DNA from: Trichosphaerium sp. ATCC 40318
Lineage: Eukaryota > Protista > Tubulinea
Direction: 5' to 3'
Assembly (NCBI GenBank): GCA_038496445.1
Contig: JALMLS010000100.1
Coordinates: forward strand, 1 to 64,000
Length of the DNA: 64,000 bases
Below, piece after piece: positions 1-60,030 of the stretch (position 1 is its first letter; every line of letters begins with the position of its first letter). The translations under genes were made by a program, and so were the position numbers. The notes beneath the pieces were generated by a model. It was not told the origin of the DNA. It did not search any database and saw nothing but the letters and a program-made list of their open reading frames with translations.

Positions 1-1721
1 AGAGTGTGTGCGTAAGGACTCTTGAATTTTTTAATAGGGAGCCATTTGTCGAATTGTTTGATCCATCTTTTAGAATTTAAAGAGTCAGTAACTATAATAA
101 TAGGTAACTCTTTGGGTGTGATACGAGCTGCCATTTCTATAGCTTCTAGTTCGGCCCCATTTGAGTCGTCATGAAATAAAGTATGAAATTTCAACCATTT
201 GTTTTTGTTGATTGACAACGCTATGCCACTGTATGCAACTCCATCTATAACGCTACCATTCGTTGCAATAATTGACGTACCATTGACTTTTGTAGTAATG
301 CTATTAAAAGTTGGCACACTCATGGGTTTTGCTAGTAAAGACGTTTTACGAATCAAACCTATGTATTTAATATTGTAGTTAGTATTATTAAGGAGCCTTT
401 TACACGTTTTAAAGTCTGAGGCTACTGATTCACTACCTATTGCACCTTCTTTACAGTTGAGATTATCTTTGAGAGCTGTCTTTACAAATGCCTGTGTTTG
501 AGTATTCTTTAATGATAAGAGACCAAAACCTACGTTGCTTGATTGAACTCTCTCATTATGTGCATTTGTTTGTATTTTAACTTTACGCTTTATAATTCTT
601 GTTGCTAAGTTATCCCATTTTTTTAGCCATACTTTAGGGATGTTAATGACGCTTTGTGTAAATCTAACTTTAGCTATTGTTACTTGATTAATAATCCTGA
701 CTTTTTGGGCTGTAGTAAAGTAATTAGTGTTAACTAAATTAATTACCATCTTAAATGAGCTTCCTAATTTGGTAAAATGTTCCTTAAAGTCTAGATTCAT
801 GTTAATTAGTATACCAAGGTATTTATACGTTTCATTTGGTTTTCCTATTGGGATTTGACTACCTTTCCAGTGCAATGGTTTATGGTAGATTTCTTCAGCT
901 AATTCTTCTTTGTTAGTGAGCAACGATGATTTCTCTGTGTTAATATTAATGTCATAAAAGGAGCAAAAAGAAAGAAGTAGGTCATATAGTTTATGTAAAT
1001 CCTCTAAGTTCTCCGCTAAAATCACTAAGTCGTCTGCGTAAGCAATTACTGTAACAATTTTACCATCAGCGCATTTGAAACCTAACTTACTTTCTTCCAT
1101 TTTAAGAACAAGCGAGTTAATAAAGAAATCCCAAATCATTGGTGATATGATATCTCCTTGTCTAGTACCTCTATTAATTCTAATTTCTGCTTCACTCACC
1201 TGAGTTTTAATCGTTGTCTTGATTTCTTTAAAAAGCGATACCAACACTTTTCTTATACTTTTACTGAAACCATGCCATTTGAAGATATTGTCAATAGCCC
1301 AATGTGGAATTGAATCGTACGCCTTTCTTAAATCTATAAATAACGCATATAGATCCTTACCTTTATGATTAGCTTCTCTTACCGCCGAGATAAATTTCTT
1401 ATGTGCCATATGAATTGATTTACCTTTAACAAAACCGTATTGGTTTTTACTTAACAGATTGTTATTTTTATTAGCTGATTCTAATACGTCCGTAAGTATT
1501 CTAGAATAAATTTTATACAATGAGTTGAGTAGTGATATTGGTCTAAAATTTAACGCATCTGTTGGATCACCGTTTTTTACTAGCATTATAGTGGTACTGT
1601 TTTTCCATTTCTCAGGAATAAAAGACATTTTAAAGCAATATTTCATAAGGTTAGTGAGCATGGTGATTGCTTCATTAGGAAGCGTTTTATATATTTTAGC
1701 GTCAATTTTGGAGAACCCTGG

Positions 1722-2752
1722 CAGTAGTAAAATAGAAATGGGAATTTTTAAGTAATCCACCCTGTTTTCCTATGGGAAAAGTAGACGGAAAAACTCTTCC
1801 TTAATTCCCATTGAATTTATATGAAATTCTGTAAGTATTACTCATAGAATTCTTAGAGTATTACTTTTGGAATTGCGTATGTATTTTATATAGAATTCTC
1901 TATGTATTCTTTATAGCATTTCTTAATGTATTTTTTGTAGATTTCAATAAAAAATACTTTATAAATTACACAAAATATTATTCGATACTTTGGTTCAGAT
2001 TTAATGCAAAGTCATTTTATTTATTGATCATTACAAAATACAAACATCCTAAATAATACGTACAAGTTAAATACATCGTGTCTTCATAAACGAAAGAAGT
2101 AATTTGATCACATTTGGTTTTGAGAGCCTGAACAATAATTAATGCATTTGTAAACGCTAAATTAAGAACGCGTAGGGTTTTTTGATAAATTAAGTGGAAA
2201 TAAGCTTTAAAAACAACGTACTTGGAGTTAATGCTTTAAATACATTCTTTAATGGTGTAATAAGGCTGTTGCAATGCTTTAATCATCCTAAAACAGATAA
2301 GTAAGAGATATTTATGTTTAAGTGATTTTCCAAACCACCTAAAACGCGTTTTCCATTACTTTTTGGATTAATGCACTTTAACCTGTACCATTGGTTTTTT
2401 CACCTTTAATAATAGCATGTGGATATTGTTTGCTAGAAAAACCTATGTACCTAAGGTGTCGATGGTTTTTTGCAAATATAAAACTAAACCCTAACCCTAA
2501 CTTAATTTGTACTTTCATAAACCTCAACCTAGCCCTAACCCTAACCCTAACTAAATTAGTACATTATTTGGTGGATTTTGTACAATAATTCTGAAAATTC
2601 CGTATTTAAGGGAATATTATGGTAATTCTATCAAAAATCCTGCAATAAAAAAAAATAAAAATAAGAATTCTTCACAAATTACCTTAAAAATCCCTAAAAC
2701 AAAGGAATTTAGTGGGATTTATATCCAAAATCCCGTTTTCATTTTACCACTG
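1722..2752. mobile_element. Non-autonomous TIR element A (1031 bp), 2-bp TSD GG
   Basis: Left end CAGTAGTAAAATAGAAATGGGAATTTT; right end reverse complement CAGTGGTAAAATGAAAACGGGATTTT. Flanked by GG/GG. GAATT/AATTC-rich subterminal regions. Confidence 0.9.
2480..2553 (+). repeat. Short degenerate (CCCTAA)n telomere-like tracts inside element A
   Basis: aaccctaaccctaac and gccctaaccctaaccctaac. Confidence 0.7.
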
Positions 2753-3224
2753 GGTGCTTTAAATGAAGCTATTCGTTTGGCAGCGTTTTTGAAAGTATGT
2801 TCATCAATTGCGTCTATGTCAAATTCTTTGTTGTTAGTTTTAGGTTCCATGTCAAAAGGTATAAGTTCTTCTGCGTTTTGTACCTCGCTATCTTTAAAAA
2901 CCGTACCCCATTTATGTTTAATTTCTTCATTCATTTCTTCATTTGATGCGACTTCTGTACTATCTTCTCTAGTGAATGATTGAGGGAAATCGTTAGTTTT
3001 GAGGTTTCTGAGTTTTTTGTATCTGCGAAAGAGAGATCTTGATTTACTATTGACTATTTTTTCGATCATGTTGTCAACGTGTTTGTTTCTTATTTCCTTC
3101 CTAATTTGATCTTTGACCACTTTCAGTTTTTTCATTGCTTCATTTGCGAAATCTATATATTCTTTGTTGCTTAGAGGTATAGTATCTTCAAAGCCTTTAA
3201 GTATTTTATTGACTTTGTGAAGTA

Positions 3225-4284
3225 CAGGTCTAAAAATTAAAGTGGTATATACCAGTTTTTTTATGGTATATACCACTTTTTTCAACAAAATAGTATATGA
3301 ACTGGTATATACCATTTTGAAATACCACTTTTTTTAGAAATTAAGTGAATAAAAAAGTGGTATATGGAAGTGGTATATACCACTTTTCATTCACATAATG
3401 AGACCTTCTAAAAATGGTATATAAAGTGGTATATACCACTTTTTTATGGTATGTGGTATATACCACCTTTTTATTGGTATATACCACTTTTATGGTATGC
3501 TTCAAGAAGGTCATTAAGGAGCTTTTTGGTAATGGGTTTTCTTGTTGAACGATCATAGACGTCATACATTGAACGGTGCGTAGGGACCTTAGTATATCAT
3601 AGAATCTAACCAAACCAAGCTCATTCAAACCGCAGGACCTGATTCCAGTACCAATATTAAGGAAACTATATTGCAGGTATTATACAGACGTTCGTGGGTA
3701 CCAGACAAAGTGTTATTTTATTTTCGTTTGATATACATTAACCGACCTCCGTAGGCCTTAGTAATTGATAGATTCGGGTGGGACCACTTTCATTAGGTGC
3801 GCAGCATGTTTTTACAGTAGGTACAGCAAGCTCATGGAGATGGACGAATTTTCCAGACGCCCATAGTAATGTAACTGTAGTGGACATTGTCCAAAACTTG
3901 TAACTCACAAACTGTGTATTAAATAAAGTGTATTTTCTGGAATTGCAGGTGTACCATAAGTAGGCATAAAGTGGTATATAAGAGTGGTATATACCATGAA
4001 AAACTGGTATAAAAAAGTGGTATATAACTGGTATATACCTAAAAAAAGTGGTATAAAAAAGTGGTATATTTTTTTTTTTCTGGTGAAAAAAAGTGGTATA
4101 TTTTCTGTTTTTATACCTGTTTTTTTTGGTATATTTTTGGTATATTTTGTCAATATACCTCTTTTTTTGGTATATTTCAGTCAAAATATACCACTTTTTT
4201 TGGTATATACCATGAAAAACTGGTATAAAAAAGTGGTATAAAAGTGGTATATACCAAAAAAACTGGTATATTTTTTTAGACCTG
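3225..4284. mobile_element. Non-autonomous TIR element B (1060 bp), 2-bp TSD TA
   Basis: TIR CAGGTCTAAAAA / TTTTTAGACCTG. Arrays of AAGTGGTATATACCAC-type motifs at both ends. Confidence 0.92.
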
Positions 4285-4623
4285 TAGCGCATTCTCTAAT
4301 ATCTTTTTTCCTTGTGTAATGTTGATTTTTGAACTAATAAGATACCTACCATGTTTAATTATGTTAAATAACGTTTTAGCATTGTTTAGAGAAAAGTTTT
4401 TGATGATTTTTTCTGTTAGGTTTACTCTAAGCTTGGATTTATGTCCTATTTTAGATTCGAGGTAAGTATAAAGTTTACTGGTAAATTTTTCTAAAAATAA
4501 ATTCCAATAAATATCCGCAATTTCATCGTATCCTTTGTTTAATGCTTTGTGATATATATCTATAACCTCAGGTCCGATGTGCTCCTTTAAGTTATTTCAG
4601 ACAAGTAGTTTTTTGAGGTATTT

Positions 4624-5553
4624 CAGGGCTGAAACTAAATAAGGCTTTTTTTGCAAAAGCCTTTTTTTTTGCCACCAAATACAGTCTTATTTTTCACCAA
4701 ATTGCCTTGTTTTTGCCAAAAAAAATGAGCAAATATGAGGCATTGCCTTGTAATTTTGGGCTTTGGAGCCTCATATTTGGGCCAAATAGCAAGCAACTGG
4801 TTCACTAATTAGCCTTAAAATAGCCTGCATTGTTGGTTCAATAATGCCTCATTTTTAGTGCAACAATAAGGCATTTTTGCCCTCAATTTTTGGGCATAAC
4901 CCAGGCACCATATACTCATAAAACAAGGCTTTATATAGGCATACAATAGTGATTCATTTATTAAAGTACAGTACACAAAACACAAAAAACTTCAATGTCC
5001 TCCATGTGAAAAAAAACCTTTAGCTAGAAAAAAAAATTAACAAATTATTGGTATAATTTTCGCGGACTGGAAAAATGGTTTAAAGTACCTATACTCCTGT
5101 TGTAGGTGCATTTGGGTGCTGCGGTTCGAATGGCGGTGGTTTCGTTAGAATCCATAAAATACTAAGCGAGTGGTGACGTCGTCTATATAAAACGTCAGTA
5201 GTAAATGAAAAAAAATGTTTAGGAAGTGTTGGTGTGGTGGAAACTTACCTTAAACCAATGTATCCTTAATGTACAATGTGTACACAACCAATGCCTAATT
5301 GGTGCCTGTAAATTTAAGGCTGGCAATGCATAAAAAAACTAGGGCAGGCATTGCCTAAAAAAAACAAGGCATTGCAATAATTAAGGCATTGCCCAACAAA
5401 GCCTTATTTCAATGCCTGATTTTTGCCTTTTTTGCCATTGCCTTTGCAAAATCAGGCATTGCCATTTTTGCATGCCTGATTTTTGCCATCAATGCCTGAT
5501 TTTAAAAAAATGCCTTCATATTTAAGGCAAAGCCTTGTTTAGTTTCAGCCCTG
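4624..5553. mobile_element. Non-autonomous TIR element C (930 bp), 2-bp TSD TT
   Basis: TIR CAGGGCTGAAACTAAAtAAGGC / GCCTTgTTTAGTTTCAGCCCTG. AAGGCA/TGCCT motif arrays. Confidence 0.93.
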
Positions 5554-7962
5554 TTGTTACTTACATTTCTGAGGTACAACCTTTCTATTTTGACTTCGTA
5601 TCTTTTTTCAGGTGTAAAATTATTGATTGGTACCTTTAAGTTTAGAGCTATCCGTTTATGGTCCGACTTGAGAGGTTTTTCTTCTAATATTCTAGATGAT
5701 ATCGTCTCAAATTTCATTTCTTTTCCAACCAAAAAAAAATCTATTCTAGATTTATGCTTTGTTGCTGAGTGAGTATGAGTATATTGGGGGACTGTGGATC
5801 TAAAAGGATCGAAAAGGTTTAGTTCGTCACAAAAATTTTCCAGCATTTCAGTAGACCTTGGGATATTACCTTCAGTATCTGCAACACTAGGAGGAGTGTT
5901 CCAATCACCACCCATTATTACATTGTCGTAAGGTATACCAAATCTGTCACACCAGTCAGGTATTTTGTCAGCTAAAAACTCAAAATTTTCTTGTCTTGTA
6001 ATACCGTCTTTAGGACTAATATACGTGTTTATAACTAAATAGCGCTTACCTATTTCTTCTTCTAAACCTATTGCGATTGGGAGAGCACACATTTTTGAAC
6101 AATTAATTTTTTTAATTTTTTTACTTATGGTTTTTTTAACAAAAGTTATTATTCCGCGCATAGAGATTGTTTTCCTAGATATGTCTTTCCACGTACTTGC
6201 TAATTCAGTGTCGTTCATTTTTAGTAAGTTTGACGCAAAAGAAAAATCCTCACCCCTTACCTTTTTGTATTCTGATTCTTTTCTAACTATTGTAGACAAA
6301 AGAACTTTATGGCGACTTTGTAAGTTGTCGAAAATAAAATAATTTGGTAAAATTTTTTGTAGGTCATTTTTAACGTACTTGAAGTCTTTTGTTGTTATAT
6401 GCGCTTCCTGTACAAAAAAAAAATCTGGATTATTTTCTGAGATAATTTCTATAATCTGTTTTATTTTGTTAGTAATGCAACCCGAGTACAAGTTTTGTGA
6501 GAAAAAGAAAAGGGGTTTTTTATTGACGTTATCCATCATCTTGGAAGAAATTGTAGCACGTAATCAGTGTTCGGCATAATGACTCCTAGATCTAAGGCTC
6601 TGTCCTTATCCTCAGTGGTTGCGAAAGTGACAAAAGCAAGATTTCCAAAGGCCTTGGTATCCTTGTTATGATATTTTTCAACTGTTATTACATTGAGATT
6701 CATACGTCTTCGAAGATAAGCGATAAACTTAAAAGCTCTAAAGGTAGCGAGTTGGTTGTTAATGAAACCTTTGAGAACACAGAAGTAATCTGGATCTTTG
6801 ATTCTGGTAATGGAGAATTGGTTTGCGTTACTCCAAATGAGACCATTTGTGATCGCCTTCATAAATCTACAGCTTTCTTGATAATTTGGTACCACGAGCT
6901 TTCCGTAAAGAGGTCTTCTATCTTGTTGTCTTTCTGATATGTACAATGTGTCCATAGTCATCTCTCCGGCTAGTGGATAGCACATAGTAATACCTTCACG
7001 GACGCTTTTCGCTGTTGCACCTTCTCTGATACTTCCAATCCAGAACTTACAATGTGTCGATTTAGCGTCTATATCTATACCTGCTTGTTTATCCATCTCG
7101 GCTAGTGTGGTTTTCATAACGTAAACTGGTTCGTTTGCGATCTTTCTCACAAAATTGTATGTTTCTTCATTGGCAACAGAGAAGAACAAGTTGTCACCGA
7201 TCCATTGAATAGATCCTTCGTTAATCATCGACGTAAACCAAAATCTTTGACTGTGTGGGAGGTTGCTACGTTCTTCTAGAGTGGATGGACCAGGGTGATC
7301 AAGTTTTTTGTTGAGACCTTTGTATGGATCGAAAAGCTCATTTACCCAATTTGAGCGGTCTGCATGTGGTCCAATGCCATTGTGACGAACCCAAATACAA
7401 TTCAATTCATTTTCTGAAAGTTCATCTTCGCCGTTTGAAAAATCGATTTTTTCTACCATTGCTTTAAACTTTGGGTCCTTGCGGAGCTTAATCAAGGAGA
7501 TAGATTGTACTCTGCGTCTTCTAATCTCTTCTTCTGATATTTCGTTTGTAAGTTTTCCGCTGTTAACTTTTGTAAACCAATCACTAAGCCATTCTTTCGC
7601 TTGCAATTCATGGTCTTAAAGCGCATCTTCTGGTGTAGGGGGTATACCTCTAGTGACATCAAATGGGTTTTGAATTGGAGGAGCCGTGTTCGCAGGAGGT
7701 GCTGGAGGGACAACTGGAGGGTTTTGTATCATTTGAGCAGGGGGTGCTTGGGTAGGTGTTCTTGGTAGTTGAGTTCAGGTCTGAAAATTATCATGGTATA
7801 ATACCATATTTTATGGTATAATCACCTTTTATGGTACAAGCTCAGTATAATCCATAATTATACCATATAATTATACCATAAAATATGGTATTATACCATG
7901 TTTTTTGGACAAATGGTATAACAGCCATTATACCATGTTTATACCATATCTCGATTTATAGA

Positions 7963-8253
7963 ATATAATTATACCATAAAACATGGTATTATACCATGGT
8001 ATTATACTGCATTTTAAAGTATATTATACCATGCATTATACCATATAATTATACCATAAAACATGGTACTATACCATGGTATTATACTGCATTTTACAGT
8101 ATATTATACCATGCATTATACCATATAATTATACCATAAAACACAGTATTATACCATGGTATTATACTGTATTTTAAAGTATTGTATACCGTGCATTATA
8201 CCATATAATTATACCATAAAATGTGGTATTATACCGTGGTATTATACCATATA
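7963..8253 (+). repeat. 80-bp tandem repeat (~3.6 copies) in the left arm of element D
   Basis: ATATAATTATACCATAAA recurs at 7963, 8043, 8123 and 8203. Confidence 0.9.
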
Positions 8254-8409
8254 AGTATAAGTTAGTCAAAGCTCACTTGGTCTGCACTTGATTTAATAGC
8301 ATATGGACCTATGCAAACGCCATACCACACAATGCTTTGACAGTAGCCGCTATTGAACATAATTGGCATATAAATGTGTGAAAAACAGTTTTAAGAGAGA
8401 AATCTGGTA

Positions 8410-8860
8410 ACGTGCCCCAATTACGGGCGTTTTAGGGATAAATTGGCCAACTTTCTCCAATTGATGGTATTTGAGGAAGAAACCACTCTGCATACCCCAT
8501 GTTAGAACGCTACAGTGGTAGACACACCAAAAACGCGTTTAGCGCTCGAAAAATGCCCATTCGCAAAAAACCTCCAATTGGAGGTTTTTTTCTCTGGCTC
8601 TCATTTTTTTCTCCCCTCCATAGGCATTTTTACACTCAATCAATGCCATACAGCCTCATTTACCAAATCAGGAGCAAAATTATTTATTTTTTTTTGACAT
8701 TCTTGATATATGCCCCAATATGTGTTAAACCGTGCAATTAGTGTTATAAGGCAAAGTTGTTTCAGAGCCTACCCATTTTTCGAGTTTTTTGGTTTTTTTT
8801 GGATTTTTTTGGATTTTTTTGGTTTTTTTCCTACTAAACGCCCGCATTTGCTGGAACAGA
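8410..8860. mobile_element. Possible small inverted-repeat element nested in D (TA-flanked)
   Basis: Inverted CGGGCGTTT/AAACGCCCG near both ends, internal inverted CTCGAAAAATG/CATTTTTCGAG, TA on both sides. The termini match poorly. Confidence 0.4.
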
Positions 8861-9883
8861 TAGCATTTAGGCTCTTCACCCATGCGTTGACCTTACGAGT
8901 GATATTGTAAACCAATTGGCTAAGCCAGGGCATAAAACTAAGTCTTGACCAGTTTATCGCCCGCACAACACAAGGTATGCTAGAAAGTAGTTGTTTTAAA
9001 GCTGTTTGCCACAGGTTTTACAGGCTTAATAGGTGATATAAAAAAAACAAAACGTGTTAGCCGCCCAACCAGGTACTATTCCGCTAGAACTCGTTTCCGA
9101 TGAGGTTGGTAGCTATTTTCATTTCTTTGTTTTAGTCTTGGTTTGGCTTCACTGTGCAGGTCATTTGTTACTCTCAGTGTTGCCATCACAACAAAACAGC
9201 AATTTTTGTACGACTATTTATTTTGTGTACAAGAAACCAAGCCGGCGCTAACTCTTCTTTTAGGTTTCATGCTATATCCATTCAATGCACTTACAACAAG
9301 TATGATCTGTTCTTTTAAGGTTATTTGATGTGTCACTGCAAAAAAGGACATGGGCAAAACTAAAGGTCACGGATGTAAACAAAAAAAAAATGTATTAATA
9401 AATGTGTTTTTATTTTTAGAACAGTTTTTACACGGTATAATACACCTGGTTTATGTGGTATAATCTACCAAGTTTTAAGGTATAATATACCAGGCTTTAT
9501 GGTATTATACTGTGCTTTATACCATGTTTTATGGTAGAATTATACCATATAATGCATTTTTTCAGGTGAAAAAATATGGTATAAATTCGCACTTTCTACT
9601 GTATATTTATGGTATAATTTGGCTGTTTCATGGTATAAATCCTTTGATTTATGGTATATTATACTGGAATTTGTGGTATAAAATTGGAATCAATGGTATA
9701 ATTATACCACAAATTCATGGTATCTACCATAAAAACAGCTCAAGAATTTTAGACCTGTTTGCGTCGTTTTTGTTTGAGCATGGGTTGGGTTGTTAGGGTT
9801 AACATTCGCTTTTAGTATGTAAGAAGAGAGACAACTACAGGATATATAATGTGAGTTTAGTGTACTTTGTTTTGAAGTTTCAT

Positions 9884-10734
9884 CAGGGCTGAAACTCAAC
9901 AAGGCATTTTTGGACAATGCCTAGGCATTTTCATCAAATAATGCCTTATTTTTTACAAAAATGCCTAGTTTTTGCCTCATTCAAAAAGGCAAATACAGGG
10001 CAATGCCTTATTTTTTGCTCCAAAAATGCCTCATATTTGATGAAAAATGCTTGCATCTGGTACACAAGATTGCAATGGTTTTGCCTGCATATTTTTAGAA
10101 ATTATGCCCTTCAAATTAGGGCATAACTCATGCATCAATGCCTTATTTTGAAGGCAAAAAGGAAGCATTATCATAGTTTACAGTGCCTAATAAACCAGGG
10201 CATTTTCAGGTAATAACACAACTTTTTATTTTATAATACAGTACACATACAATACACAAAACTTCTAAGTCCACATTTGAAAAAACCTTAAAGAAAATAT
10301 GAGATGGTGTAGAAAAAAAAAAAAAAAAACTTACCTTGTAGTGTTAGAATTCCGCGGTCCTGGAAATATAGCGGAGTTCACTCCTACTACTGTTGTAGGT
10401 GAAATAGGGTGCTGCGGTTCGTTTGGCAGTGGTTTCGTCTAATTTCATGAATTACTAAGAGCGCTAGGTGCCTATCTATATAAAACGTCAGTAGGTGATG
10501 TGAAAAAAAAAGTGTAAAAGTTGTTTGACTGTTACTTACCTTAAACCACTTCCTTAATGTGATCAGTCCCTATGATATAGTATAGGCAATGCCTTATATA
10601 TGAATTAAAATACAAGGCATACATTGCTTAAAAAAATAAGGCATAATAAAGGCATAAAATACTTGCAATACAGAAATACAAGGCAATACAAGGATTACCT
10701 GATTTTATGCAATGCCAAAAGATGTAAAAATGCC
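9884..10734. mobile_element. Element E, diverged relative of C, right TIR missing
   Basis: Left end CAGGGCTGAAACTcAAcAAGGC, AAGGCA/TGCC arrays, core collinear with C. No right TIR before the AGX1-like sequence. Confidence 0.85.
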
Positions 10735-11533
10735 CGCTAGTACTCCTTTACTGGTATCAACATGGGTTATCGTAACGCCACGATACTTCTTACTCGATAG
10801 AGCTTTCTATTTACAGTGTTAGGTTGTTTTTACCTAATGATCACTTGAACAATTAAAACAACTCGTACCTTTATATCTTCCATTGATGGAAAAGTTCCAG
10901 CAGGTCCTTGGACTATATCTGCATTTACATTGTATGATTTGAACCTAACGATATACTTTGTTGGCACAAAACAACAAACGTGATTATACGTTCACGCACG
11001 TGTTCAAAAATCGGTCACCGAACTATTTTGTAACTGTCAGTACAACAAAAAAACCGCTTTAAAAAAGGTCACGTACGTATCCTGAGCTAATGATAAGAGC
11101 GTCGCTGTCCTTTTTGGAAAGAAAAAGTTACAAACACTTTTTGGTAAAATAGCTAAATACATACTTGTTCAAACAAGTTAACTACAGTTGCATCCCATCC
11201 TAAGGTGCCTATTCGTTTATTAGCCGATGTTTACTGAGTTTTTAATGTACCTGAGGCTGAAATTACAAACGGTTGCCCTTTTTTACAGCAAAATACCTTT
11301 CTATACATCATAAGCTACAGTCAGCGTAAACTACCAGTACCTTAGGTTTATTAACACTTCAGAGAAGATTTTAATGAATACAGGCGATACGTGGCTCTCT
11401 GGGCGCCTTCCTAGGCGACTTGTCATTTGTTTTTTAGTGAAAATGACATAAACGTACCTAGCGCTTCGAGAACTTGTGGATCGACCTCGATTGGTCCTGG
11501 TATCATTAAAATAGGGCTTGAAGATGCGCTCAT
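10735..11533 (-). pseudogene. AGX1: Alanine-glyoxylate/serine-pyruvate aminotransferase (class V), 5' half only
   Basis: Spliced exons encode LMIPGP, SHVSPVF, QPFVISASGTLGWD, LIISSGYFGDRF and VTITHVDTSKGVL. The sequence stops at element E. Confidence 0.85.
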
Positions 11534-16417: not shown

Positions 16418-17830
16418 TCACTGAAGTGACCTCCTTACATTCCAGTTGTTGGAACCGCTGGCAAAGTTGGGTGAGATTGATGTTAAATAAATAAACTTAA
16501 CCTGTTCACATTTAGGGCGCTCAGGACTGTCATAGCGTTGTTCAACAGCATGTAGACCTTCTAATGATAGAATGGCTTCATCTGTTATTTGACCACAATT
16601 GTTTAGACCAATTGTATGAACGCCCGATAACATTTTGACACCTTTATCTGTTACTGAAGTGCTGTCGAGGTTACTGCCAGTGCTTTGATACCTTCGTCGT
16701 CACTGAAGTATGTCCAAGATCAATGGTATGAACGCCTGCAAGTGCTTTGATACTTTCATCTGTTACTGAAGTACGTCCAAGGTGAATAGTATGAACCCCT
16801 GCAAGTGCTTTGACGTTTTTGTCAGTAACTGAAGTACCATCCAGATATGGTATGAACACCTTTCAATGCTTCAACACCTTTATCTGTAACTACCATTTCA
16901 GTAAGTCGAATGGTATGAACTCCTGCAAGTTCCTTAATACCTTCATCTGTAGCTGAAGTACGATAAAGGTTAATAGCATGAACACCTCGTAGTGACTGCA
17001 TTCCTTCATTAGTTATATTGGTGCGCCACGTAAGGTCAATTGTATGAACACCTGCAAGTCCATCATCTGTAACATTGCAATGTGCAATATCAATTGTATG
17101 TACGCCTTTAATTCTTTGATACCTTCGTCTGTCAGTGAAGTACAACGATACAAACAAATAGAATGTACTCCAGCAAGTGCTTTCAGATCGTGATCTTTAA
17201 TAACACCAGTTTTCCCATGTTCAGTTGAACTTCTTTTGAATGAAGTATCAATGTATCGACATCCAGATAGCAATGAAAACACAGTATTGGTTTCAACATT
17301 CATTGTAATAATAGTGTTGTTCATCACGCCTTTATATTGTCTGATCTGTAAAATATCTGCATATAAACTCTTTCGTATCCAACAACATCATGGATGATAT
17401 CAGCCATCAGATGGCATGATTGAGCAACAGCAAATCTTGTTTTCGCTTCTGTATGACTTAAAATCGTGGATACTACTTCTGGTGGGAAGTTGATGATGTT
17501 CGCTACTTTGTATGTACTCGTTTGTCTCCTTGTTTAACATTTAATTGTAAGAAATAGAAGCTGAAGACGTACTGTATTGTTTGTTGTGTTTCGGTTACTC
17601 ACCGTCCTTAGAGTGTACTACGAGCTGTTTGGTTGTCACTGGTTGTACGTGTGCTTTTAAAGAGATGTTGGTGTTTTTGTCGTAGCAGGGTTGTATTTGC
17701 TGCGTTTAAGATGCTTTCAAGTTGGTTTATGAACACTTCACGTTCTTTTGCAACGATTGAGCTGAACTCTTCCCTGTGGTTATTGCAATAGTACGTGATG
17801 ACTTGTTCTACTGAAACGCCAGGTGCACTC
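16418..17830 (-). pseudogene. Leucine-rich-repeat protein with (L)xGVHTIxL repeats, frameshifted
   Basis: About a dozen 21-23 aa repeats (VTDxxVKALAGVHTIxL) spread over four ORFs in different frames with no evident introns between them. Confidence 0.75.
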
Positions 17831-47446: not shown

Positions 47447-48761
47447 CTACCACCCAGGTACATCACCAGGCTTCTTTGCCATCTTGTAATACGTGCCAGT
47501 TGGCCTACCAGACTCCTAAAAATAAACAATCAATTTTTTGAAAAAACAACAGTATTGCTATTTACCTTATTGTACGGCCTACCGTAATTTTGCAAGTGCT
47601 TTTTATCCTTCGCTGGGATATCTGATGCCTTGACATCCGGTTGAGGTACGTACTTTCCATCCACAACTTTGTAGTACATATTGTTCACAACAACACCCTC
47701 AAAATCTTTGACATCCCAACAAGCAAGCTCAGTGTGGCGTTGTCCATACTCAGCATAAAGCTGCTCGTGCATTACGTCATAATCAACACCCTTTGCTTTG
47801 AAAAAGGCCATGATTTCTTGAATTGGTGTGTCATCCTTTACAGGGTACGGCGAGTCAAGATCAGTTGCAGCGTCGAGAACCTTGATAATGTACTGCATTG
47901 GAAAGAAACGACCAGGTGTAAAGTGAACACCGTTAAGGTACTGGAGGTGTTGGAAAGGTAGGAGAGGGAGGAGCATAAATTGAAGATGGAGCTGGTATTG
48001 AGAAGGTGGGTAATTCATACCAGTAGCAATGTAAGGTCGCAATTGCTCAACATCCGTAATTTTAGGGTTGTTGACAAACTTTGCACGCCAAGCCTTGTTC
48101 GGCCAGAATTGCTCCTTGACTACCTTGAAACAGAGCTCATACATACGAAGTAGTATTGCTTTGCCCTCTTTCGGATTTTTCAAGAGGAATCTCCAATCTG
48201 GGATGTACCTAGAGCGCAATGAGACTGTAGTTGGTGGAAAGAGGCTGCTGGTATTATAGCGTACTTGGAAGTAGGTATGACGTTCAAATGACAGGGCGTT
48301 AGTGCGAGCAAATCGTCGAACACAATGAAATCAGCATCCTGGTGGCGCAAAGAGATGGTAAAAGGGAATGGGCCCTTTTGAACACCATAAATAAAGCCAG
48401 AAAAAATGTTGTTGGTGTACGAAATCTCGGTCGGTAAGGAAGCACCACAGGCATTACTAGTAGCGTGTTAAGGATTTGTGTATGATCTATTTCTGTACCA
48501 GTTCAGCAATGTAAACGCGTTCGGTTTACCACAAGAAGTACACTTCTTCACCTTATTGCGCACTTGTCGAAGGAAACCAGCGTTATCTTTGTGTTTTTCA
48601 ACAAGCTCCGACATTTTACCTGCGAATGCAGGTTCTGACTTCTCGCAAGGGAAATCAACGTGTGGTTGCTCAGTGATCGCATTAGCTAAATAACCAGTTG
48701 TGGTAACGTTAAAAGCGCCACCATTAACGCCAACAGCTACTGGGAATTGTGGCAATGACAT
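47447..48761 (-). CDS. Uncharacterised protein with an N-terminal CxxC zinc motif and a HIT/DcpS-like motif
   Basis: CTSCGKPNA...CNACG; YIPDWRFL; NYPPSQYQLHLQF. Confidence 0.7.
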
Positions 48762-52436: not shown

Positions 52437-55400
52437 ATGCTGTTACGGTGTGGATATTTATCAGCTCATGTTGCGTGTGCGTATACTCCAAAAGTAGTTG
52501 CACGGGTACAGCGTAAGAGATACACCACAGTGCGTGTCAAACAGAATAGAAGTTGTTTGATTGGTAAAGGAAGATCGTTTAGTACGTTATTTGATAACTA
52601 TTAGGAGCTAACTGTTTTTTTTTAAGCGTCCGTCAAAACAAACAATCTAAAGGTATCCAAGTGGCTTAACGCTTCTAAATTATCGCGTGGGCGTCGATTC
52701 TTTAGAACAGCTCCTATATTTCGTTATGCAGCCTCAAATGACACTACGATCGTTGGAAGCGGCCTAATTCCGTTAGTCAACAGGGTATTTACACCACTGA
52801 ACAGCTTTGTATTTAACTAATGAATTTTAAGCTACAAGAGATTTTTCAGCTCGCGAAGGTAGATGCTGCGCTAGATTTACCTCAAATTGTAGTTATTGGA
52901 GGGTAAGTTAACTGTTTTTTTTTGTAATTGTTTTGCGAGTCGTTTTATTACTTTACAACGCTAACAACACATCAGGCAAAGCGGAGGGTACGCATAAAAA
53001 AGGAAACCTTCAATAATATCTAATGTCCACCAGAAAAAGTTCAGTTCTTGAGAACTTGGTTGGTAGAGACTTTCTTCCGCGTGGTAGAGGTATTGTAACG
53101 CGAAGGCATGTTATTACATCTTCACAACCTTGCCGTTAACAGTTTTTAAGACCTCTCATATTACAACTTCATCGTAGCCCCTCTGGTGCGTCTTGGTAAT
53201 AGAATACTATGTTTGTTTACTTTAAATCAGATAGTGAAGAGTGGGGCGAGTTTGCTCACAAACAAGGGCAGAGATTTACAGATTTTCAACAAATTAAGTC
53301 TGAGATTGCGCTAGAAACTGATCGTATTGGTACGCTTTTTTTAAATCACTCTCACAATGTTCTTGCTCATGAATGATCAAAGCTGGTGGGAATAAAAACA
53401 TCTCAAATGACCCAATCATACTGAAGATACATTCACCAAAAGTTTTGGATCTAACTTTGATCGACACTCCCGGGATTGCTAGGGTATGATTTTGAACAAC
53501 TGACTTTTTCTTTTATTAAACACAGCTGCTAGAATCCAGTCGGAGATCAACCGGCAGATATTGAAATACAAGTAAGTTATACTGGTATTTTTTTCACAAC
53601 TGACTTTTTTGTAGATAAAGCAAATGGTAAATTGAAGACTTGTTAACCAATTGACGCCTAACAATTGCGTATAGGTCAAGTCATACATCAGCAAGCCAAA
53701 CACAATCATCTTAGCTGTTCATCCTGCTAATCAAGGTACATTATACTACAATTATGATTGAGCTTATAAGTCTTGAGATGTGGCTACTTCTGATTCTTTA
53801 CATCTTGCACGTGAGGTCGACCCTGATGGCAAACGAACGGTTGGTGTACTAACTAAAGTTGATCTTATGGATAAGGTTCGACATGATTTCTTTGTTGACC
53901 CTACTAATGTCAAAAAGGGCGTTGATGCTTTACCTATACTCATGGGTGAACATATGCCGCTATTACACGGTTGGATCGCTGTTGTAAACAGAGGACAGAC
54001 AGACATAGAACTCAACAAGCCTATCACGAGTTCTTTAGCTGCTGAGGGAGAATACTTCATGAGACATCCTAGTTACACACCTATTGCTTCAAGATGTGGT
54101 TCTGAGTTTTTAGCCAAAAAATGCAGCAATGTATGTAGTTAAATACTGTTTGTTACACTAAATTACTACCAATAGATGCTCAGTGATCATATTCGAGGGT
54201 GGTTACCATCATTAAAGGACCTCATACATAAACAAAGGAAAAAGAAGCAAAAACAACTAGATCAATATGGTACTCCTCTAGAAGGTATCACAGATTCGCA
54301 AGCTGGTAGAGTACGTCTTATATAGCTTATATTGTGCTCAAAAATGCTTTAGGGATGGCTTGTGCTTCAGCTCTTGGATAAATTCTGCGCGGATTTCAGA
54401 CATGCCATTGAAGGCACTTCAATGGATAGTGACTCTCAAGTATTGTGCGGTCACCTCTCTTATAAGTGCATCGTTGTACTCACCACCTCGTAGAAATGGA
54501 GGAGCTAGAATAAGACACATCTTTAACGAGGCATTTACTAAGCGTATAGAATCCATATCCGCTGTTCAAGGTCTAAAGGTGTCCGACATTAGAACGGCAA
54601 TTAAAAACGCTGCTGTACGTGATCACTATATCCCAGTTGATCGTATTAACAAGCACCACATAGGGGCCAAAACCAGCTCTTTTTGTTCCAGACGCTGCTT
54701 TCGAGACTCTAGGTATAGTTATAGCTTGCTATCTTGTCTCTTTGTTTCTTATTGTTGTACTAGTTAAACGTCAGATAAATTTACTTCGGGAACCGGCTAT
54801 TGAATGTGCTGAGAGCGTATTTGATGAACTTTTACGTATTGTTGCCGAAATAGACAACAAGGTGAGAGTTCTTGTTTACTTGAATATTTTTGGTTAACTC
54901 ATTTTTTTTTTCTCTTTAGGATATGAAACGTTTCATGCATTTACGTGATGAAGTATTAAATGTAGCTAATACAATCCTACGGAAATGCCTTGGAAAGACA
55001 AACAAGATGATCAAAAAATTGATTGACTTGGAGCTATCTTATGTGCGTTTTTTTCTCTACTTTTTTTTTTGTATTTACTTTTTGTTCTTCAGATAAACAC
55101 AAGCCACCCTGATTTCATTGGTGTGCAATTATTGTTAAAGAAAGAGAGTACGTAGTTGTGATGTCAAACATACTTGCCATATTGTTGTTGTTTATGTTGT
55201 GTTTAGTGCTTGAAACTAGTCCAGCTAATGAAGAAGATTTGGAAGGAGCTTTGAGAGCTGAAAGCAAGCCTGTTGCATTCCCTTTCAGTTTATTCTCTCG
55301 TGGTACTTCACATTCTAGTTCAAGCGAATCAGTACGTCATGGTTGTGTAACTGTTTATTGATGATATATTTAGGCACCAGCTCATAAGCCTATTAAACTC

Positions 55401-55762
55401 AGCGATAGAGAAAAACTCCAAATCAAGCTACTCAGTATGTTTAGTTATTTCCGTCAATCTTTTTTTTGTACTAACCTAAAATCTCACTCACAGAGGCTCT
55501 TTTGGAATCATATTTTAATATTTCACGAAAAACAATCTCAGACTTGGTTGTGAAATCTGTAATGATGGAATTGGTTAATGGTATGAAAGATAAGCTTCAA
55601 CCTGAACTTGTTGCGGAGCTTTACCGAGAAGACTTGTTTGAAAGTTTACTTCAAGAAACAAGCGGTCTTGCTGCAAAAAGAACAGCAGTTAAAAAAGAGG
55701 TTGATGCGCTACTTGAAGCCGAAAACTTATTACAAATGTCTGAAGTACGCGATATTCATTAA
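52437..55762 (+). CDS. Dynamin-related protein (DRP1/Vps1 type) with an N-terminal extension
   Basis: [42 protein letters not shown]-terminal GED. Confidence 0.92.
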
Positions 55763-57517: not shown

Positions 57518-60030
57518 TTATTTTAAAAAGTCGGTGTTGTTAGCTACTTTTCTTTGGTGCAGCTGCTTCTTGTATTTCTTTCTCGATGTTTTTTAACTCA
57601 CTGTTTGTTTCATTATTAGGAGCTCTCACATTTGTGAGTGTCTACAGAGAAAAAGTTAGTATTCCAGAGACGACTTTGCGGAAAAGTCTTTTTCAAAAAA
57701 GATGAAACTTAAGAATTTTTTGTTGGTTTTCCTGAACAGAAAGGTTGGTTTTGAGATTGTTGATATCATAATGAAAGTAACCACTTATACTTATTACGAT
57801 ATTAAAAAGGTTTTTGATGGGTTTTTTGAAAAGACAAAGGTAAAAAAGATGCAACAACTTTTTTGTTTCAAAAAAAACATCACAAAAAACTAGAATTGTT
57901 TGCGTACCCAAGTACGCTTATTTGAGCTTGGTAAACCTGTCAATATACCACCAAAGTATAGAGTAGCCCAGAACGCATCAACGTGTTGATCATATGTAAT
58001 TGTCTTTGGTATTTCGATTGTAACATTTTCGTCTTTGAGTATAGATATAAGTTTTGTATTGACAATTTCTTTTTCTTCTTCTTTCAGTTTGTTAAAAACC
58101 TTCATTGCAGATGGATGTTTATTATGTGTAAGCCAAAAATTTTCAATTTTTCTACGTTTCATACATATAACAAGTGATCTAGGATTAATTATAGGAACTT
58201 GTTGGTTTGGAGCAATAAAACCACCGCAATGATCTAATGCAACATAGCGAGATTTAAAACGTCTTTCTATAAATTTAATAGCTTCTTTATACTCTGTTGG
58301 TATACCAAATCTATTAGCGAACCTATAGAATAATAAAAAGTCAGACAAGAATAGATAAAAGACAAACAGTAGGAACAAGAAAAAAAATTGGAAAAACGGA
58401 AAAAATCGAATTATTCTTCGTGTCCGTACAGGGTGTCAGCAAAAGTGAACATTTCTACGTCAGGTACTTCACCAAATAATGCGTTGGCTGCGAAAGGTAA
58501 TTGACCCATAAAAAGTGCTTTATGGAGGAATCTATAGAAGAAAGTTAAGAATAATTATTTGGATAAAACAGAAAATTATTTCAATAAAAGGTTATTCAGA
58601 AGAAAAGACCTCAAAGCCTCGGGGATACTGCCAAATAAATTATTTTATAACCCATAATTTAAGAGAGTATTCACGCAATTATTGAGGCAACAAAACAGCG
58701 AAAAGGGCGTAGCAATAAGCCCATTCTATTTTATCAAAATAATAAGAAATCTCAAAAAAACTGCGTACTTGTTGTCTTTAAGTACCATTGAAAACATATC
58801 CTTTAATTCCCGAAGTGCTTCTTCATAGAACCCTTTTTCTTTTGCAATATTAAGAGGAGCATCATATTCATCTACTAATAATATAACCTTTTTATGATCA
58901 TTTATACGAGAAACAAGAGATGTCAAAGTCTTTAAGGAAGTTTCAATGTTTGCTTTTCTATCGTATACAGCACTGAAAGCCTTTGTTTCTTGAATAGTAA
59001 GCTTTGAGTTTTTGAATAGATTAAAATAAGGTTTAAACGATGCTTTAAGCGCGTGACATAGATTTATCCTCATAACTTCCCAAGTATCACCAACAATCCT
59101 TGACATATTAAACCTTATTGTAGGCGTACTATTCATATGTCTTTTGCAGAATTCGGGATCAACTCTGTTTAATCTAGAATTGTCAAAACAAAGCGCAGCT
59201 TCTTGGTGAAGTTTTGGGTTGTAAAATACGTGTATCATTGATAAATTTATTGACTTTCCAAAGCCATGTGGTCGAAGAATTACACCAACCTATTTTTTTT
59301 AAAAGTTCGTTAAAATTTGATGCTAAACACAACTGACATTACAAACCTTTGGTTTCATGTCGTGAAACTCTTTAACCATAAGCGTTTTATCATGATGAAA
59401 TAGGTCCTTGTCAATTACAACGAAGAAATTTGTTTCTGTAATGCTAAGTGGTCTTGTTGGTCTTATTTCCTCCCTACGAGGTCTGGCTACGGCAAATACT
59501 GGTATTTCTCCTCGCAATTCAGGCGCTCTGATCGCTCTTGATAGTAGCTAAGCACATTAGCATTAATTGCGACAAAACATTGTACTTTCTCTGCGTCACC
59601 ACGTTTTAGTGTTGCAAAGCCGTAGCGAGCTGATTTTCCCAGACTGTCAAATGCAATCCTTTGTTTTATGCTCACAATGCCTAAATCCTCAAAATAACGC
59701 GCCAGTTGCTTATCTGTTACTTGTTGTGTGAGGTTTTTGACACATAGTTCTACTGTGGCCTAGTAGAGTTAGTGGTAACGAAATCAGGCTTATTGTGTAC
59801 ATTTTGGCTGTACGAGCGAACTGAGGAGCCAGTAAGAATATTATTAACGCTGGAGCTCTAAACGTGTTTTTAGCTGTTAAAACGCTGTGATAAATTTAAT
59901 TTCGTACAGCTACGTGATTTTGGTCCTGTTTGCGAAAACCTGTGTTGTTTGTCACTTAATACAGTTGTAAACGCACGAACCTGTGGTAGTAGTACAATGC
60001 CGCGACGTATGGGCCCTCCAAAGCCTCATT
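57518..60030 (-). CDS. RRM + AAA-ATPase_like (PF09820-type) protein
   Basis: LCVKNL...YGFATL (RRM); DKT, RPHGFGKSINLSM (Walker A), LLVDEYDAP (Walker B), LYFGGILT. The 5' end is uncertain. Confidence 0.72.

Follow-up and report, generated by a model that had tools for sequence, protein, structure and literature searches.

A conserved core in non-autonomous CACTA/CMC-type elements of Trichosphaerium sp. may join the leader of a parent transposon to its poly(A) end

In the common view, a mini DNA transposon requires nothing but its ends. In the 64,000-nt stretch of Trichosphaerium sp. ATCC 40318 DNA analysed here (contig JALMLS010000100.1, positions 1 to 64,000; "the window"), three elements with terminal inverted repeats (TIRs), named B, C and E, also carry between their arms a related core that runs to an AATAAA poly(A) signal. 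The question is where this core came from and what has kept it. As judged from alignments, its letters and spacing are conserved, rather than a protein or a fold. We read the core as the 5' leader of a parent transposon joined to the parent's poly(A) end and kept for its letters and spacing, and we give this reading a probability of about 0.5. The leftover ends of a parent gene, which the original prediction (made from the letters of the window) had offered as the plain alternative to a functional transcript, are the likelier origin.

The original prediction described a 50-nt block in each of B, C and E, and all three are present at the positions given in Table 1. The block is identical at 34/50 positions between B and C, 32/50 between B and E and 40/50 between C and E. 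This is beyond chance, the best gap-free 50-nt match between shuffled cores being 25-32 in 200 trials. The landmarks ATTAAGGA, TTTCCAG, GGAC and AATAAA also follow in the order first described, with TTTCCAG in exact register (columns 94-100). The gap-free alignment of the full copies (B2, C and E) covers 125 columns, not 50, and contains five invariant islands: CTTAGTA, ACCAC, CGCAGCA, ACAG.A and TTTCCAG. The register holds past the block, where B2 matches 23 of the 45 columns at which C and E agree at shift 0, compared with 7-16 at other shifts.

There are four copies of the core, and a profile built from any three of them recovers the remaining one, with a score of 32-56 bits where the rest of the window reaches 15 bits at most. 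One copy, B1, had been missed; it lies within element B, its block 169 nt before that of B2. It has its own ATTAAGGA, and its similarity ends about 20 nt past the block, where the ATTAAGGA of B2 starts. The B1 block matches C at 39/50 positions and B2 at 30/50, which hints that B is a chimera, the difference being within about two standard errors.

Several observations concern the islands and the occurrence of the core. On the opposite strand the TTTCCAG island (3850-3856, 5067-5073 and 10360-10366) reads CTGGAAA, close to the TIR word CTGAAA, and it is possibly an internal transposase-binding site. An AG acceptor-like triplet stands within four of the five islands. CTTAGTA was considered as an initiator and rejected, TTAGT lying upstream of only 2/10 rough host starts. 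Scans with the core pattern found nothing in metagenome or viral contigs, and the C/E TIR found nothing in viral contigs. A single prokaryote match to the pattern was set aside as chance, with 10-15/51 positions identical beyond the pattern itself.

The core is far better kept than its surroundings, contrary to the possibility, raised with the original prediction, that it diverges like neutral sequence. Arms and intron interior, taken as background, are 60.6% identical between C and E. Identity is complete in the donor region (15/15 positions) and in the branch-acceptor region (19/19) and reaches 11/12 in exon 1; the 25 nt after the block match at 21/25, so that the first 75 module positions reach 61/75 (P ~1e-4). 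All 25 consensus splice positions are identical (P ~4e-6). Spacers inside the same 141-nt exon are 25-50% identical and contain no gap. Gaplessness of C and E alone gives P ~0.09, to which B2 adds. All these conservation tests are post hoc and use a single pair, C-E. Since splice signals and block are kept far above the arms, the core appears to have been under selection and not to be simply neutral debris.

The original prediction of a small spliced, polyadenylated unit holds in part: its anatomy is present, as predicted features, in C and E, while B has weak or wrong splice sites and the second intron of C is destroyed. We scored splice sites with a host model trained on 19 GT-AG introns of 42-73 nt. 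The three predicted introns of C and E have donors in the top 0.4% of this model and, at 48-66 nt, lie within the host range; the acceptor of E intron 2 is in the top 0.1%. The CTGAC branch stands 13 nt before the acceptor end in both C and E, compared with 11-15 nt in host introns. The sequence AG/GTAAGT occurs only 6 times in 128 kb (both strands), and 3 of these are in the cores of C and E on the same strand. In B the donor at 3677 has a score of 1.2, whereas the weakest of the 19 host donors has 2.5, and the site proposed as acceptor, GTTTxATATA(G/C), ends there in AC and so is no acceptor. The best substitute intron of B, 3698-3754, has a donor in the top 15%.

Introns as such are expected by default in any gene remnant of this host, given its density of about one per 150 nt (20 in 2.9 kb). 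This figure comes from a dynamin-like gene at 52820-55762, where removal of 20 introns leaves a 651-codon frame whose sole stop is terminal. On the opposite strand the branch-acceptor of C and E (5185-5193 and 10478-10486, +) reads TATATAAAA, a perfect TATA box, beside a TGACGT word; both are absent in B.

Which elements carry the core bears on its origin. Elements A, B, C and D have CAG..CTG termini with TIRs and 2-bp target-site duplications (TSDs), and E retains one end. Short motifs repeated in both orientations form subterminal arrays, with TGGTAT in B and D and AGGCAT in C and E. The CMCT clade has 5'-CA..TG-3' termini with TIRs and a TSD of 2-5 bp (PMC12730594). On these three terminal features B, C and E are filed as CACTA/CMC (CMCT clade)-type non-autonomous elements. 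The cognate DDE transposase of the clade, with its C(2)C and H(3-4)H motifs, has no counterpart in the 64-kb window.

The arms were first described as unrelated. This stands for B against C and E, while C and E are collinear over their whole length and form one family, with arms 59-61% identical. The arms of B do not align to those of C (z ~0 to 3) and do align to those of D (z 10-16), in part through the common motif. By their sequence the arms of B and of C/E are nevertheless related, not foreign: the TIRs share CAGG.CT.AAA, and GGTAT differs from GGCAT by one base. Only B has a core with arms that do not align to C/E, so the claim that the core crosses families is a claim about B. A profile of the cores finds no trace of the core in A or D. 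As A and D are intact insertions, the core is dispensable for mobility.

Both A and D have AATAAA just inside one arm (A at 2025/2021, D at 9397) and intron-like stretches (1960-2480 on the minus strand and 8250-9430 on the plus strand), in a layout like that of B, C and E. A crude intron finder did not separate A and D from the intronless long interspersed nuclear element (LINE) into which several of the elements are inserted. CpG is nearly absent from the arms of B, C and E (3225-3500, 3960-4284, 4624-4950, 5290-5553, 9884-10200 and 10580-10735), at observed/expected counts of 1/10, 0/20 and 0/14; the ratio is 0.9 in the window, 0.85 in the LINE and 0.6-1.4 in the cores. The CpG-poor arms could reflect avoidance of methylation at protein-binding arrays.

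In the reading that we favour, B, C and E would derive by internal deletion from CACTA/CMC-type transposons, as their anatomy and established CACTA biology suggest, and a parental transposase would mobilise them in trans by reading the TIRs and the subterminal arrays. The core would consist of the start of the parent's transcription unit (a short exon 1, an intron and an exon 2 of fixed length) and of its last exon with the poly(A) signal. Transcription would proceed from the shorter arm through the core as far as AATAAA. The spliced RNA of C and E, about 250-270 nt long, would be sterile, and its product would play no part of its own. Selection would have retained the splice signals, the five islands and the distances between them, which would serve in cis as signals in promoter-proximal DNA or in pre-mRNA. 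It would have acted mostly while the sequence served the autonomous parent; the conservation is observed and the place of action is what we infer. With faster turnover of the arms, the core would still be common to families whose arms no longer align.

We favour the joined leader and poly(A) end because such elements (KP, dSpm) usually arise in this way, because the three full copies differ exactly where the deletion junction would lie, and because splice signals decay in B and in the second intron of C. Between module end and last exon, E has an intact intron, C a 24-nt remnant without donor and B2 no intron. We also count for it the AATAAA just inside one arm of A and D, and the retention of letters and spacing with no coding signal and no fold. 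The like TIRs and the one-base difference in arm motif count in the same direction, as CACTA subterminal motifs diverge fast between subfamilies (PMC2613891).

Several points weigh against this reading. No autonomous parent lies in the window, and the match of the core to a parental 5' end is one that we infer. Independent deletions from two parents would need a nearly identical start and end in elements as collinear as C and E, and one old deletion would place selection inside the mini-elements. D, with its B-type arms, retains no leader beside either arm.

The strongest rival, which we hold to be unlikely at present, sees in the core a mini-gene complete in itself, under selection in non-autonomous lineages and passed between arm families. 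Its transcription and splicing, or proteins bound to the islands, would act in cis, so that the copy stays open or unsilenced and is mobilised more often. Such a gene would explain why splice positions (25/25 against a 61% background) and block are well kept in C and E and why the exon has no gap although its spacers are poor. It would account for the end-to-end collinearity of C and E and for the mismatch of core and arm in B and D, with B joining D-type arms to a C/E-type core and B1 closer to C than to B2, as in a chimera. In theory, selection on elements with common machinery can readily favour effects in cis alone (a public-goods argument, PMC13558583), and introns shield foreign DNA from HUSH silencing in human cells, an analogy only (PMC8770142). 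Against it stand the weak splice sites of B, the destroyed second intron of C, the truncation of B1 and the mobility of A and D without a core. The gaplessness of C and E alone is not significant, and the single-pair, post hoc nature of the conservation tests weighs on this rival.

A non-coding RNA acting in trans as guide, decoy or scaffold, with islands that pair with nucleic acid or bind protein, seems improbable to us. Nucleotide-level conservation, fixed spacing in a predicted exon and a poly(A) signal would suit it, and the original prediction had proposed a functional non-coding RNA. A structured one is not borne out. Folding z-scores were -1.2 to +1.9 and the structure conservation index at most 0.34 in 3-4 sequences (low power), a value matched by column shuffles in 20-100% of trials. 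No helix with a two-sided change was found across B2, C and E (three sequences, low power), and no core has an Rfam match, which leaves the cores without a hit to known families such as 5S, tRNA, snRNA, snoRNA or ribozymes. No related sequence was found in viral, metagenome or prokaryote collections, and a benefit in trans would be exposed to free riders. Readings as tRNA-like, 5S-like, hammerhead, H/ACA or spliced-leader RNA were rejected, as neither ARAGORN nor Rfam supports them and the stems are not conserved.

A slightly poorer candidate is a coding unit, either a micropeptide of 34-36 residues begun at the first ATG of the spliced RNA or an N-terminal coding exon that evolves fast. Contrary to the original statement that no frame is open in all three copies, B2, C and E have one in common that stays open over 32-36 codons, and over 51 in B1. 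It starts at the first ATG of both spliced models (36 codons in C, 34 in E), is open in all four copies with a stop at codons 33-37 in three, and lies in a gap-free exon whose length, 141 nt, is a multiple of three. The ratio of non-synonymous to synonymous differences (pN/pS) in this frame is however 1.27 for C-E, 0.90 and 0.82 for the B2 pairs and 2.07 for B1-C, and no synonymous excess appears in any of six frames for the three full-length pairs (0.74-2.4). An open frame arises in 9.5% of column shuffles, its composition is unlike host codons, and B1 and B2 have ATA in place of the ATG. Searches with the peptide gave no match in Pfam, no exact record and, among 1.84 billion proteins, no homologue. 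The micropeptide proposed earlier is thus not supported, given a pN/pS near 1, the missing ATG in B and the lack of a homologue. An opposite-strand frame with a C-G/C..G..R..L pattern was also rejected; it has a stop in E, pN/pS of 0.74-1.5 and a composition score that 11% of shuffles also attain.

Least probable is a host gene fragment captured and spread between elements, as in the Pack-type capture of soybean Tgm-Express1: the introns are host-like, but the window holds no source gene, the core has no coding signature, and captured pieces would be expected to decay evenly, without kept islands and spacing.

The insertion site helps to date the elements. As listed in Table 1, three different CAG elements (A, B and C) have inserted in one LINE, which makes it a local insertion hotspot. 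Excising them with one duplicate each restores an ORF2 frame of 1170 codons with a single stop, so that A, B and C are young insertions, and the divergence between elements therefore arose in mobile lineages. The APE domain of the LINE is PF14529; its ORF1 has 356 aa and found zero homologues in a protein search.

Table 1. Positions of the transposons, core copies, predicted splice features and target LINE in the window. ORF, open reading frame.
Feature	Coordinates	Strand	Description
Element A	1722..2752	-	CAGT(A/G)GT ends; TSD GG; arm motif of its own; without core (internal control)
Element B	3225..4284	+	Non-autonomous TIR element; CAGGTCT ends; TSD TA; arm motif TGGTAT; core twice in tandem
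Core copy B1	3513..3656	+	ATTAAGGA; weak intron candidate 3529-3583; block 3588-3637; truncated
Core copy B2	3656..3927	+	ATTAAGGA to AATAAA; 3698-3754 (57 nt, weak donor) the most host-like intron candidate; without second intron
B2 gap-free 125-nt module	3757..3881	+	Block 3757-3806; TTTCCAG 3850-3856
Element C	4624..5553	-	Ends CAGGGCTG (TIR match 24/25); TSD TT; arm motif AGGCAT
C intron 1	5183..5248	-	66 nt; AAG/GTAAGT, CTGAC branch 13 nt before TAG; predicted
C exon 2	5042..5182	-	141 nt; module 5042-5166, block 5117-5166, 36-codon ORF 5048-5155 without coding signal
C intron-2 remnant and last exon	4957..5041	-	24-nt remnant, donor lost; AATAAA 4957-4962
Element D	7776..9757	+	Ends and arm motif of B type; TSD TT; without core (internal control)
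Element E	9884..10735 (end approximate)	-	C family; single TIR at 9884, other end missing near 10735
E intron 1	10476..10539	-	64 nt; predicted
E exon 2	10335..10475	-	141 nt; module 10335-10459, block 10410-10459, 34-codon ORF 10347-10448
E intron 2	10287..10334	-	48 nt; donor and acceptor top-scoring; predicted
E last exon	10225..10286	-	TGTA-rich stretch; AATAAA 10225-10230
Near-intact LINE, insertion target	1..7606	-	ORF1 6536-7606; ORF2 (APE endonuclease) from 6539; carries insertions A, B and C

Other features were seen in the elements without a core and in the rest of the window. A telomere-like CCCTAA run lies within element A (2489-2550). The left arm of D has an 80-nt tandem array (7956-8247; 3.7 copies, 91%), a case of arm growth by duplication, and its interior a perfect 26-nt palindrome (8565-8590). 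A two-part gene at 47572-48761 (-) belongs to an unnamed eukaryotic family of about 380 aa, with PF11969 in some relatives and a best relative at 50%. An AAA-ATPase-like fragment (PF09820, a mostly bacterial family) lies in a low-GC stretch at 57890-59238 (-), and 63-nt tandem coding repeats at 16600-17200 (-) are probably a leucine-rich-repeat gene.

If the core is a parent leader, it shows where a little-studied CMC lineage of protists has its conserved regulatory start, a useful but ordinary result. The bolder view, for which we see a smaller chance, is that non-autonomous cut-and-paste transposons carry a fixed-length central domain in a tiny spliced gene, selected within the mini-elements, swapped between arm families and acting in cis against silencing or for mobilisation: a DNA-transposon counterpart of the CORE domain of short interspersed elements (SINEs). 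Selection inside mini-elements would mean that transcription or splicing gives a cis advantage to an element that moves without RNA, and would offer a small system in which to test why central domains persist in non-autonomous elements. A limited literature search found no report of a spliced core common to families of miniature inverted-repeat elements.

Among known systems, the non-autonomous CMCT/CACTA elements are alike in their CA..TG ends, short TIRs, 2-bp TSDs, asymmetric subfamily-specific subterminal arrays and lack of a transposase (PMC12730594, PMC2613891, PMC9033089). They differ in having CACTA/CAC, TGT or CATCA ends where ours have CAG, and our host is a protist. The conserved stretch described here, which matches nothing in Rfam, is moreover not 5S-derived, and the exon that holds it is predicted to be spliced and has a fixed length. 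In wheat SNAC elements, too, an internal stretch is reportedly conserved above the remainder. Internally deleted P elements (KP, D50) are likewise non-autonomous, retain the start and end of the transcript and can be expressed (PMC12393704). KP, however, acts via a retained DNA-binding protein, whereas the core has no such protein or coding signal, and P elements have 8-bp TSDs.

The SINE central domains (CORE, V, Deu and Meta), whose function is unknown (PMC4824008), offer an analogy rather than membership, the core being so far known from one genome. B, C and E are cut-and-paste elements with TIRs and 2-bp TSDs in place of SINE features; they lack a Pol III head, a LINE tail and any tRNA or 5S match, and can do without an RNA intermediate. 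The likeness is in design: an internal domain, 45-120 nt long in SINEs, that is common to non-autonomous families with different ends, is 61-86% identical between them and occurs in chimeras (PMC4824008).

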